Shown here: in pieces, positions 1 to 6,183 of the stretch
How the letters are laid out: the number at the start of each line of letters is the position of its first letter
Position numbering within the stretch: position 1 is the first letter of the stretch
From: Neoechinorhynchus agilis
Lineage: Eukaryota > Animalia > Acanthocephala
NCBI GenBank assembly: GCA_051530055.1
Contig: CM121342.1
Location: 5,207,489 to 5,271,488 of the forward strand
Reading direction: 5' to 3'
DNA: 64,000 bases
Notes under the pieces: model-generated
What the model was told of the DNA's origin: nothing
The model's database searches: none
The model's input: the letters and a program-made list of their open reading frames with translations, nothing else
Position numbers and translations under genes: made by a program

Positions 1-339
1 ATTTGTTTATCCGGTGGGATTCGTAGATTGAGTTTATAGTCAGCTTTGTTGCCAACCAAAGCACCTGTTTGCTGGATCATGATGGCTTCCATGGTCACTC
101 TGTCGCGTCTTACGTCACTCCTCGCAAGAACTTCGACGCCGTCAAAATTGATCTCATGCCCATTGTCATTGATGTGGGACACTATTGCCGAGCTCACATC
201 AGACTTTTTGATAGCTGCTCTTCTGTGTTCAGCAATCCTTCTTTTTAGATTGTTCGTTTGTCCCACATATGACAGACTGCAATTCGAACATGGATCTTAT
301 AGACACATCCAGCTGGAAGATCTTCATTCATCGGTCGGA

Positions 340-389
340 GTATTTGAAAATTTTCGGCCTTTTCGTAGGCCTTCTTCAGTCAGATCTAC
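340..389 (-). ncRNA. Minimal type I hammerhead ribozyme (representative copy). Consensus-intact copies also at 751-800, 1571-1620, 1982-2031, 3785-3834, 4135-4184, 5369-5418; mutated copies at 1160, 2391, 3375, 4550, 4960, 5780
   Basis: Minus strand reads GUAGAUCUGA-CUGAAGA-A-GGCC(UACGAAAA)GGCC-GAAA-AUU-U-UCAAAUAC. This gives both catalytic boxes, a 4-5 bp stem II, a loopless palindromic stem III (AAUU) and an imperfect stem I (AUCUGA/UCAAAU). The layout matches the minimal hammerheads known from Penelope-like pseudo-LTRs. The predicted cleavage triplet UUU is suboptimal. Confidence 0.78.
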
Positions 390-1205
390 AATTTAAAAGA
401 AACATTATCAATTTGTTTATCCGGTGGGATTCGTAGATTGAGTTAATAGTCAGCTTTGTTGCCAACCAAAGTACCTGTTTGCTGGATCATGATGGCTTCC
501 ATGGTCACTCTGTCGCGTCTTACGTCACTCCTCGCAAGAACTTCGACGCCGTCAAAATTGATCTCATGCCCATTGTCATTGATGTGGGACACTATTGCCT
601 AGCTCACATCAGACTTTTTGATAGCTGCTCTTCTGTGTTCAGCAATCCTTCTTTTTAGATTGTTCGTTTGTCCCACATATGACAGACTGCAATTCGAACA
701 TAGGATCTTATAGACACATCCAGCTGGAAGATCTTCATTCTTCGGTCGGAGTATTTGAAAATTTTCGGCCTTTTCGTTGACCTTCTTCAGTCAGATCTAC
801 AATTTAAAAGAAACATTATCAGTTAGTTAATCCGGTGGGATTCGTAGATTGAGTTTATAGTCAGCTTTGTTGCCAACAAAAGTATCCGTTTGCTGGATCA
901 TGATGGCTTCCATGGTCACTCTGCCGCGTCTTACGTCACTCCTCGCAAGAACTTCGACACCGTCAAAATTGATCTCATGCCCATTGCCATTGACGTGGGA
1001 CACTATTGCCGAGCTCACATCAGACTCTTTGATAGCTGCTCTTCTGTGTTAGCAATCCTTCTTTTTAGATTGTTCGTTTGTCCCGCATATGACAGGCTGC
1101 AATTCGAACATGGGATTTATAGACACATCCAGCTGGAAGATCTTCATTCTTCGGTCGGAGTATTTGAACATTTTCGGCCTTTTCGTTGGCCTTCTTCAGT
1201 CAGAT

Positions 1206-1562
1206 CTACAATTTAAAAGAAACATTATCAATTTGTTTGTCCGGTGGGATTCGTAGATTGAGTTTATAGTCAGCTTTGTTGCCAACCAAAGTACCTGTTT
1301 GCTGGATCATGATGGCTTCCATGGTCACTCTGTCGCGTCTTACGTCACTCCTCGCAAGAACTTCGACGCCGTCAAAATTGATCTCATGCCCATTGTCATT
1401 GACGTGGGACACTATTGCCGAGCTCACATCAGACTTTTTGATAGCTGCTCTTCTGTGTGCAGCAATCCTTCTTTTTAGATTGTTTGTTTGTCCCACATAT
1501 GACAGACTGCAATTCGAACATGGGATCTGATAGACACATCCAGCTGGAAGATCTTCATTCAT
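1206..1562 (-). CDS. Stand-alone Penelope-type GIY-YIG endonuclease, intact copy (118 aa)
   Basis: ATG at 1562 to TAG at 1206. Contains VYQIPCSNC, YVGQT, RRIAAH, SH, GH, MEA and GN, i.e. catalytic Y/R/E/N plus CCHH Zn ligands. Expression not shown. Confidence 0.7.
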   Translation of the reverse strand: MNEDLPAGCVYQIPCSNCSLSYVGQTNNLKRRIAAHRRAAIKKSDVSSAIVSHVNDNGHEINFDGVEVLARSDVRRDRVTMEAIMIQQTGTLVGNKADYKLNLRIPPDKQIDNVSFKL

Positions 1563-2793: not shown

Positions 2794-2803
2794 CGGTCGG
2801 AGT

Positions 2804-2985
2804 GAGAGGAAAAGAGAGAGAGAGAGAGAGAGAGAGAGAGAGAGAGAGAGAGAGAGAGAGAGAGAGAGAGAGAGAGAGAGAGAGAGAGAGAGAGAGAGAG
2901 AGAGAGAGAGAGAGAGAGAGAGAGAGAGAGAGAGAGAGAGAGAGAGAGAGAGAGAGAGAGAGAGAGAGAGAGAGAGAGAGAGAGA
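2804..2985 (+). repeat. (GA)n microsatellite, about 86 pure units, replacing the 3' half of one hammerhead
   Basis: Pure AG run 2813-2985, between cggtcggagt and accgtttggccttcttcag. Confidence 0.9.
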
Positions 2986-5900
2986 ACCGTTTGGCCTTCT
3001 TCAGTCAGATCTACAATTTAAAAGAAACATTATCAATTTGTTTATCCGGTGGGATTCGTAGATTGAGTTTTATAGTCAGCTTTGTTGCAAACCAAAGTAC
3101 CTGTTTGCTGGATCATGATGGCTTCCATGGTCACTCTGCCGCGTCTTACGTCACTCCTCGCAAGAACTTCGACACCGTCAAAATTGATCTCATGCCCATT
3201 GCCATTGACGTGGGACACTATTGCCGAGCTCACATCAGACTTTTTGATAGCTGCTCTTCTGTGTTAGCAATCCTTCTTTTTAGATTGTTTGTTTTTCCCG
3301 CATATGACAGACTGCAATTCGAACATGGGATTTATAGACACATACAGCTGGAAGATCTTCATTCTTCGGTCGGAGTATTTGAACATTTTCGGCCTTTTCG
3401 TTGGCCTTCTTCAGTCAGATCTACAATTTAAAAGAAACATTATCCATTTGTTTATCCGGTGGGATTCGTAGATTGAGTTTATAGTCAGCTTGTTACTTAG
3501 CAAAGTACCTGTTTGCTGGATCATGATGGCTTCCATGGTCACTCTGTCGCGTCTTACGTCACTCCTCGCAAGAACTTCGACGCCGTCAAAATTGATCTCA
3601 TGCCCATTGTCATTGATGTGGGACACTATTGCCTAGCTCACATCAGACTTTTTGATAGCTGCTCTTCTGTGTGCAGCAATCCTTCTTTTTAGATTGTTCG
3701 TTTGTCCCACATATGGCAGACTGCAATTCGAACATGGGATCTTATCGACACATCCAGCTGGAAGATCTTCATTCATCGGTCGGAGTATTTGAAAATTTTC
3801 GGCCTTTTCGTTGGCCTTCTTCAGTCAGATCTACAATTTAAAAGAAACATTATCAATTTGTTTATCCGGTGGGATTCGTAGATTGAGTTAATAGTCAGCT
3901 TTGTTTACAGCAAAGTACCTGTTTGCTGGATCATGATGGCTTCCATGGTCACTCTGTCGCGTCTTACGTCACTCCTCGCAAGAACTTCGCTGTGCGTCAA
4001 ATTGATTGTGCTGCTCTTCTGTGTGCAGCAATCCTTCTTTTTAGATTGTTCGTTTGTCCCATATATCAGACTGCAATTCGAACATGGGATCTTATGAGCC
4101 GCATCAGCTGGAAGATCTTCATTCATCGGTCGGAGTATTTGAAAATTTTCGGCCTTTTCGTTGGCCTTCTTCAGTCAGATCTACAATTTAAAAGAAACAT
4201 TATCAGTTGTTTATCCGGTGGGATTCATAGATTGAGTTTATATGTGATCGCTTTGTTGCCAACCAAAGTACCTGTTTGCTGGATCATGATGGCTTCCATG
4301 GTCACTCTGTCGCGTCTTACGTCACTCCTCGCAAGAACTTCGACGCCGTCAAAATTGATCTCATGCCCATTGTCATTGTTGTGGGACACTATTGCCGAGC
4401 TCGCATCAAGACTTTTTGGTAAGCTGCTCTTCTGTGTTAGCAATCCTTCTTTTTTAGATTGTTTGTTTTCCCACGCATGACAGACTGCGGCAATTCGAAC
4501 ATGGGATTTAGAACACATACAGCTGGAAGATCTTCATTCTTCGGTCGGAGTATTTGAACATTTTCGGCCTTTTCGTTGGCCTTCTTCAGTCAGATCTACG
4601 AGCAAAAGAAACATTATCATTTAGTTTATCCGGTGGGATTCGTAGATTGAGTTTATAGTCAGCTTTGTTGCCAACAAAAGTACCTGTTTGCTGGATCATG
4701 ATGGCTTCTATAGTAACTCTGTCGTGTCTTACGTCACGCCTCGCAAGAACTTCGACGCCGTCAAAATTGATCTCATGCCCATTGTCATTGATGTGGGACA
4801 CTATTGCCGAGCTCACATCAGAATTTTTGATAGCTGCTCTTCTGTGTTCAGCAATCCTTCCTTTTAGATTGTTTGTTTGTCCCACATATGACAGACTGCA
4901 ATTCGAACATGGGATCTTATAGACACATCCAGCTGGAAGATCTTCATTCTTCGGTCGGAGTATTTGAAAATATTCGGCCTTTTCGTTGGCCTTCTTCAGT
5001 CAGATCTACAATTTAAAAAACATTATCAGTTAGTTAATCCGGTGGGATTCGTAGATTAGGTTATAGTCAGCTTTGTTGCCAACAAAAGTATCCGTTTGCT
5101 GGATACTGATGGCTTCCATGGTCACTCTGCCGCGTCTTACGTCACTCCTCGCAAGAACTTCGACACCGTCAAAATTGATCTCATATGCCCATTGCCATTG
5201 ACGTGGGACACTATTGCCGAGCTCACATCAGACTTTTTGATAGCTGCTCTTCTGTGTTAGCAATCCTTCTTTTTAGATTGTTTGTTTGTCCCACATATGA
5301 CAGACTGCAATTCGAACATTGGATCTTATAGACACATCCAGCTGGAAGATCTTCATTCATCGATCGGAGTATTTGAAAATTTTCGGCCTTTTCGTTGGCC
5401 TTCTTCAGTCAGATCTACAATTTAAAAGAAACATTATCAATTTGTTTATCCGGTGGGATTCGTAGATTGAGTTTGTAGTCAGCTTTGTTGCCAACAAAAG
5501 TACCTGTTTGCTGGATCATGATGGCTTCCATGGTCACTCTGTCGCGTCTTACGTCACTCCTCGCAAGAACTTCGACGCCGTCAAAATTGATCTCATGCCC
5601 ATTGTCATTGACGTGGTACACTATTGCCGAGCTCACATCAGACTTTTTGATAGCTGCTCTTCTGTGTTCAGCAATCCTTCTTTTTAGATTGTTCGTTTGT
5701 CCCACATATGACAGACTGTAATTCGAACATGGGATCTGATAGACACATCCAGCTGGAAGATCTTCATTCTTCGGTCGGAGTATTTGAAAATTTTCGGCCT
5801 TTTCGTTGGCCTTCTTCGGTCAGATCTACAATTTAAAAGAAACATTATCAATTTGTTTATCCGGTGGGATTCGTAGATTGAGTTTATAGTTAGCTTTGTT

Positions 5901-6183
5901 GCCAACCAAGGTACCTGTTTGCTGGACCATGATGGCTTCCATAGTCACTCTGTCGCGCCTTACGTCACGCCTCGCAAGAACTTCGACGCCGTCAAAATTG
6001 ATCTCATGCCCATTGTCATTGATGTGGGACAGTATTGCCGAGCTCACATCAGAATTTTTGATAGCTGCTCTTCTGTGTGCAGCAATCCTTCTTTATAGAT
6101 TGTTTGTTTGTCCCACATATGACAGACTGCAATTCGAACATGGGATCTTATAGACACATCCAGCTGGAAGATCTTCATTCATC

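Follow-up and report, generated by a model that had tools for sequence, protein, structure and literature searches.

The first 6,183 nucleotides of a 64,000-nt stretch of the genome of the acanthocephalan Neoechinorhynchus agilis (contig CM121342.1, G000:C2:5207489-5271488; below, the window, meaning this whole stretch) are occupied, on the minus strand, by a tandem array whose 411-bp unit joins a GIY-YIG endonuclease frame to a hammerhead ribozyme motif. Our analysis puts at roughly three in four the probability that this array is a decaying derivative of a Penelope-like element (PLE) that lacks a reverse transcriptase (RT), was mobilised in trans and was amplified in tandem. A preliminary description of this DNA had favoured a protein-coding element and had kept a decaying satellite of amplified PLE ends as its fallback, and it is the fallback that turned out to be essentially right. 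Judged by its sequence, the unit is the 3' end of a PLE, in which the final 119 codons, encoding the GIY-YIG endonuclease domain, are followed by the stop codon and by a 3' region with a predicted minimal type-I hammerhead.

The array has a period of 410/411 bp with 92-95% matches, as called by Tandem Repeats Finder in three stretches of the window (1-2803, 2991-3989 and 4010-6180). A blastn comparison of a reference monomer with the whole array showed that it extends beyond the window's left edge to G000:C2:5204535, for a total of 23 units (array 1, C2:5204535-5213671), 15 of which lie inside the window at 1-6183. On the minus strand, each unit runs through a 357-nt frame that matches the GIY-YIG domain (Pfam PF01541, E=2e-7), then TAG, AUCUGA, the motif CUGAAGA-A-GGCC-N8-GGCC-GAAA-AUUU and UCAA-AUACUCCGACCG, after which the next frame begins. 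Several features put forward in the preliminary description were thus recovered, specifically the 410-nt tandem array over 1-6183, the GIY-YIG frame, a hammerhead motif beginning directly after the TAG, a predicted cut 16 nt before the next first codon (ATG or AAG) and an array 5' end that falls at an ORF (open reading frame) ATG (6183-6181). The unit has a GC content of 0.43 and carries GIY-YIG alone, without an RT, so that it is not itself an autonomous PLE.

The parent could be recognised in the same genome. A search with the 118-aa product of the unit returned at least 150 matches, including dispersed copies with long upstream open frames, and at two loci (L031, C1:15.44 Mb, and L032, C2:13.55 Mb) the endonuclease domain forms the C-terminus of a longer ORF that holds both RVT_1 (E=1.7e-9) and GIY-YIG. 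On this domain content, the dispersed element is a PLE and the parent of the array unit, in agreement with the derivation from a PLE that had been proposed; DNA identity between the unit and the endonuclease end of the dispersed RT-plus-endonuclease copies in this genome is 93-97%. Across the point at which the array unit starts, the parent ORF reads ...GILRPKNEDLPAGCVYKIPC..., and the unit's 5' end, AUA CUC CGA CCG AAG, corresponds in frame to ILRPK in the parent. The array 'ATG' is therefore a lysine codon, AAG, changed to ATG: at the equivalent position, inside ...GILRPKNEDLPAGC..., the parent has Lys (AAG), not even an internal Met. Locus L031 is a partial tandem that comprises, in order, a 5'-truncated copy, a hammerhead, a leader of about 65 nt and the ATG of a copy that is complete at its 5' end and has its ORF broken into two pieces. 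Compared with such an element, the unit lacks the whole stretch that begins 4 nt past the ribozyme cut and ends where the endonuclease domain starts. Pairs of 5'-truncated PLE copies inverted head to head were also seen, at L032 4711-6947 (G000:C2:13.55 Mb) and at L076 about 3401-3735 (G000:C1:1.4534 Mb), the inverted piece of the latter being the 5' boundary of array 3.

The junction between units links array 1 to two further arrays. In the 46-Mb assembly searched, the array junction TTTTCAA/ATACTCCGACCGA (TTTTCAA/ATACTCC, the slash marking the join) occurs 41 times, every one inside three arrays (C2:5.204-5.214 Mb, C2:4.549-4.555 Mb and C1:1.453-1.459 Mb) that provided the 45 near-complete monomers of our census. 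At this site, full PLE tandems read TTTTCAA/TATAAATC..., that is, they run on into the leader; the unit joins back to the ILRPK codons four nt after the predicted ribozyme cut. The identity of this internal junction across the arrays favours descent from one shared RT-less ancestor over three separate deletions. Further, past their last ribozyme all three arrays end in a PLE leader tail of about 80 nt, ...TATAAATC...ATGATTAATTTCTTTAC(A), followed by unrelated flanks, and this insertion signature of PLEs, a 3' tail taken from the next copy's 5' end, is present in the dispersed copies as well. The 5' ends of the arrays differ, falling at unit position 13 (beside a foreign satellite), position 78 and position 291 (beside an inverted piece), and the flanks are unrelated on both sides. 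Insertions of this kind, fixed at the 3' terminus, truncated to varying extents at the 5' end and set in unrelated surroundings, have the pattern of target-primed reverse transcription. Among the dispersed PLE copies (L009, L015, L021, L030, L031, L032 and L036), the leader-derived tail is shared in two length classes, one stopping near ...CGCTAATTGAAAT and the other 19-20 nt into the ORF, at ...ATGATTAATTTCTTTAC(A). In the anole PLE, RT initiates internally at two adjacent sites, as shown biochemically, and leaves a 3' 'tail' (PMC11167929), and by analogy the two tail classes would fit two such initiation sites. Since the same junction and canonical PLE tails recur in three arrays whose loci are unrelated, it is probable that the unit borrows its RT in trans, as the preliminary description had supposed.

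These array ends also bear on an origin at the DNA level alone, in which one truncated PLE was duplicated by unequal crossing-over and then moved by segmental duplication or by reintegration of an extrachromosomal circle, with no retrotransposition. Amplification of DNA did take place, as is proven by a higher-order repeat at window positions 1-2395 (minus strand), where three-monomer blocks of about 1233 bp were duplicated together with their inactivating lesions. Its monomers start at 2395/1986/1575 and then at 1164/755/344, with the next block from -66, to the left of the window; identity at a lag of three monomers is 98-99%, against an array 1 mean of about 94%, and the pattern of stops and indels recurs from block to block. 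The window is, moreover, rich in satellites. However, the flanks of the three arrays are unrelated on both sides, and a shared PLE tail terminus combined with variable 5' ends reflects target-primed reverse transcription, not random DNA breakpoints, which makes an origin without retrotransposition very unlikely. After insertion, the arrays underwent neutral drift and remodelling at the DNA level, both by unequal crossing-over, which gave rise to the three-monomer repeat, and by microsatellite invasion: an (AG)86 microsatellite at 2813-2985 (unstranded) splits the array and deletes the end of one monomer, including its hammerhead.

We propose that the RT-less PLE derivative spread in trans as RNA. 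The template would have been either a multimeric RNA or a series of monomer RNAs linked through template switching, with a full PLE's 5' leader at its end; the RT of the parent PLE would have copied it from the usual internal initiation site; and the outcome would be the three or more arrays seen at unrelated loci, which differ in their 5' truncation and share the canonical tail. A non-coding retrozyme would reach a similar layout by another path: a host RNA ligase would close hammerhead-cleaved 411-nt RNAs into circles, and rolling-circle copying of these by the PLE RT would build each array de novo. In its favour, the 411-nt unit, the type-I hammerhead per unit, the GC content and the tandem layout match the animal retrozymes that lack long terminal repeats (non-LTR retrozymes; PMC7229834), all internal junctions are identical, a circle route has been proposed for PLEs (PMC4209133), and a 2026 preprint derives animal retrozymes from PLEs (10.64898/2026.07.22.740005). 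We nevertheless regard this path as unlikely. Each array carries in its tail about 80 nt of PLE 5' leader, a sequence that the unit does not possess, so the RNA first used as template must have been linear and must have extended into a full PLE. In addition, PLE-type minimal hammerheads cleave poorly in vitro, and as dimers only (PMC4209133), and four small assemblies that are only guessed to be RNA gave no evidence of circular RNA, although they are unable to show circles.

The identification of the ribozyme rests on covariation. The curated hammerhead models of Rfam gave no match at E<=1 in window positions 1-6400, where the scan yielded only spurious, sub-threshold miRNA-like matches in hairpins of the neighbouring palindromic satellite, and the fold was therefore tested across PLE lineages. 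The input was the regions 3' of the endonuclease ORF in 37 further PLE copies, with 39-77% protein identity to the query; the hammerhead architecture was found in 27 of them, and the other 10 had no motif in the stretch scanned. Helices I and II covary in an alignment of 22 sequences drawn from 22 of the genome's PLE lineages: 88.8% of cells are paired, a share that falls to 16-53% once the 3' partners are shifted by 1-3 columns, and 41 cells have double-sided changes, against 13.3+/-3.4 in shuffles; seven of 11 pairs have a change on both sides. Helix II appears as GGCC/GGCC, GACC/GGUC, GAUCC/GGAUC and GACCC/GGGUC, and helix I as UCA/UGA, UGAU/AUCA, CAAUUC/GAAUUG and UCAAU/AUUGA. The extra A after the CUGAAGA core is present in every row (22/22, with one core variant, CUGACGA), as is A15.1-U16.1 (22/22), whose AU or UA loop gives the palindromes AAUU or AUAU, and the G10.1-C11.1 pair is found in 21 of 22. 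Known PLE hammerheads are distinguished by CUGANGA and GAAA cores, an unpaired nucleotide between A9 and G10.1, the G10.1-C11.1 pair and a palindromic helix III of 1-2 bp (PMC4209133). All of these hallmarks can be read in the array, and on these grounds its motif is a PLE-type minimal type-I hammerhead. At least eight PLE lineages (L037-L072) each have their own hammerhead variant just past the endonuclease stop codon.

An unmutated example with its junction lies at window positions 1563-1619 (minus strand), identified by reading the sequence, by minimum-free-energy folding and by covariation. The 5' strand of helix I, AUCUGA, stands right after the TAG and is followed by the core CUGAAGA, the bulged A, helix II (GGCC/GGCC), GAAA and a palindromic AAUU helix III, with the predicted cut after U17 and UCAA joined to the AUACUCCGACCG of the next unit. 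The predicted cleavage point thus follows GAAAAUUU; the minimum-free-energy fold of a 67-nt segment is a three-way hammerhead junction, and two copies are predicted to pair via the GAAAAUUUUC palindrome. By analogy with the minimal hammerheads assayed from other PLEs, the array ribozyme would probably cleave only as a dimer, through its palindromic AAUU helix III, which is in keeping with the dimer dependence suggested earlier. The accompanying claim of a hammerhead in each monomer stood only in part: the motif occurs once per unit, and motif and fold are upheld by covariation, but core and helix II are kept in just nine of the window monomers, six of which also keep the ancestral helix III. 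Within array 1, a sub-family has GAAAATGTTC replacing GAAAATTTTC (window 1172-1199, 3387-3414 and 4562-4589, plus four monomers to the left of the window). It carries a G at hammerhead position 16.1, which should break both the A15.1-U16.1 pair and the palindrome, and the variant is common to 8-9 junctions, so it was amplified after arising.

Such lesions also concern the coding role that the preliminary description had assigned to the array, namely a protein-coding retrozyme whose read-through RNA self-cleaves into 411-nt linear or circular units, each translated into a stand-alone GIY-YIG nickase that serves its own mobilisation. A complete ATG-to-TAG ORF of 118 aa with the GIY-YIG domain does exist in two monomers, the hammerhead fold is well supported, and the ATG variant is present in all three arrays. 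The ancestral codon, however, is AAG (Lys), found in the parent ORF and as the first codon of 33 of the 45 monomers, with ATG in nine. Many monomers hold stop codons or frameshifts, about a dozen of the 45 retain 118 uninterrupted codons, and the combination of ATG and an unbroken frame is limited to two of 45 genome-wide, both among the window's 15, so that the picture of every monomer as one ATG-to-TAG ORF had to be given up. Neither of the two intact ORFs lies between two unmutated hammerheads. Upstream of the first (1206-1562, minus strand) the hammerhead is unchanged, and downstream it bears a U16.1-to-G change (GAAAAUGUUC); for the second (2437-2793, minus strand), the (AG)n microsatellite replaces the upstream hammerhead, and the downstream one has a helix II mismatch as well as U16.1-to-G. 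One clade of ATG monomers is confined to array 1 (the A1 clade), and two of its four ATG monomers are broken. In a processed unit RNA, moreover, the leader would be 16 nt long and uncapped, and a poly(A) tail would be missing. Endless rolling translation of a circular unit was considered separately, as 411 = 137 x 3, and was rejected for the in-frame TAG and TGA in the 54 nt outside the ORF.

Patterns of substitution agree with the loss of coding function. The ratio of nonsynonymous to synonymous change (dN/dS, Nei-Gojobori) was 0.91 within array 1, 1.28 within array 2 and 1.33 between arrays 1 and 3, and differences were evenly spread over codon positions; dispersed PLE copies compared with each other, as a positive control, gave 0.37 and a clear third-position excess. 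Pairwise diversity was 0.054 in the ORF versus 0.053 in the ribozyme core (extreme values at the unit edges are alignment-edge artefacts and were ignored). The array monomers thus diverge neutrally, with no purifying selection on a start codon and open frame, and the three-monomer repeat of array 1 re-amplified broken monomers with stops and frameshifts, so that amplification favoured intact units no more than broken ones. This last point and the ancestral AAG are the stronger arguments against a coding role. The reading frame is a vestige, because there was no ancestral start codon and the ATG is a change from AAG in a minority of monomers. Both measures that the preliminary description had suggested, dN/dS across monomers and the relative decay of copies, speak against its proposal of units that each code for a whole endonuclease and provide their own nickase, as does the Lys codon of the parent, and we consider a protein-coding retrozyme of this kind extremely improbable. 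The same low standing applies to a live minimal replicator, in which unit RNAs would circularise, the parent RT would copy them and the rare ATG units would be translated into a GIY-YIG nickase that aids integration; if true, this would be the first protein-coding retrozyme.

Our preferred reading, a trans-mobilised and now decaying RT-less PLE derivative, has to be weighed against several observations that count against it. A master locus, with 411-bp units upstream of a 5'-intact PLE, was not found in the 46 Mb; if RT binding in this PLE depends on the start of its ORF, as in the anole PLE, the template RNA would be expected to come from a locus of this kind. No target-site duplications were evident at the array ends on inspection by eye. 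Nothing firm on transcription, cleavage or circularisation of the array came from the guessed-RNA assemblies, four small ones from one study, which on window positions 1150-2803 consist of short unitigs of 60-170 nt without information on ends, strand or circles. These runs do contain PLE-family sequence; at the unit boundaries 1575, 1986 and 2395, the displayed loose ends of the unitigs run into the parent leader or the linker between RT and endonuclease, and one 90-nt contig spans an array junction with 29 nt on its short side. The monomer tree is star-like and poorly resolved, with 28 of 47 inner branches unsupported and two well-supported cross-array sister pairs, so that the copying of multimers is inseparable from local amplification plus gene conversion. 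Finally, a neutral dN/dS is to be expected of any dead-on-arrival retroelement copy and is compatible with a once-functional master.

Elsewhere, the window is a satellite-rich region. A satellite of 14/21/56-bp units built on the palindrome TGACGTCA (ATGGCGATGACGTCATCAAAA...) occupies 6204-11748 and abuts the 5' end of the PLE array; it is followed at 11745-21786 by a 36-bp satellite of about 280 copies (88% matches), which also shows a 108-bp period. Further along are a tandem array of ten 153-bp copies with 99% identity (43392-44917) and a 160/320-bp satellite of about 9 kb (53749-63134).

All the components of this array are already known from other systems, and it is mostly a case of ordinary transposon decay. 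Like those PLEs that carry a C-terminal GIY-YIG endonuclease and insert as partial tandems with pseudo-long terminal repeats (pLTRs), it has a hammerhead placed after the stop codon and before the following copy and ends in the same 3' tail, and, as around PLEs, both head-to-tail and inverted arrangements occur around it. Unlike PLEs, whose usual form has a single truncated upstream copy, the array has a unit without RT and repeats one fixed junction 41 times, in arrays of 14-23 units. With the animal non-LTR retrozymes, including newt satellite 2, Schistosoma Sm-alpha and those of coral, mussel and axolotl (PMC7229834), it shares a single type-I hammerhead in each unit, whose helix III is a short palindrome and implies activity as a dimer, low GC, the lack of an RT and a proposed dependence on PLE machinery (preprint 10.64898/2026.07.22.740005), and it has the structure by which these elements are recognised, namely tandem repeats of about 150-450 bp, a type-I hammerhead in each, low GC and no LTR, primer-binding site or polypurine tract. 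However, its unit consists mostly of a recognisable, recently coding GIY-YIG domain, not of non-coding or pLTR sequence, and its hammerhead belongs to the minimal PLE class rather than to the canonical one with its loop-loop contacts. The hammerhead repeats of non-LTR retrozymes are expressed as circular RNAs (PMC7229834), and unit-length linear and circular RNAs are a further trait by which these elements are recognised. A third comparison is with Chlamys-N4_cRei of Chlamydomonas, a non-autonomous PLE derivative paired with Chlamys-9_cRei (PMC9977147), which is likewise RT-less, apparently mobilised by an autonomous partner and inserted in 5'-truncated form; the Chlamydomonas derivatives are short single-copy insertions, while the array was mobilised or amplified as a multimer. 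What is mildly new here is the presence of an identical 411-bp unit and internal junction in three arrays at unrelated loci, each differently 5'-truncated and each with a PLE tail, which points to mobilisation in trans as a multimer and to a link between PLEs and animal non-LTR retrozymes. The 2026 preprint (10.64898/2026.07.22.740005) argued that animal retrozymes are PLE derivatives mainly from the similarity of vertebrate pLTRs, and states that the closeness of non-vertebrate non-LTR retrozymes to PLEs was outside its examination. In this respect, the arrays of N. agilis suggest that mobilisation of multimers is possible, and they offer a young, still readable intermediate between an autonomous PLE and a hammerhead satellite or retrozyme, with the parent in the same genome, the exact junction and the RT tail.

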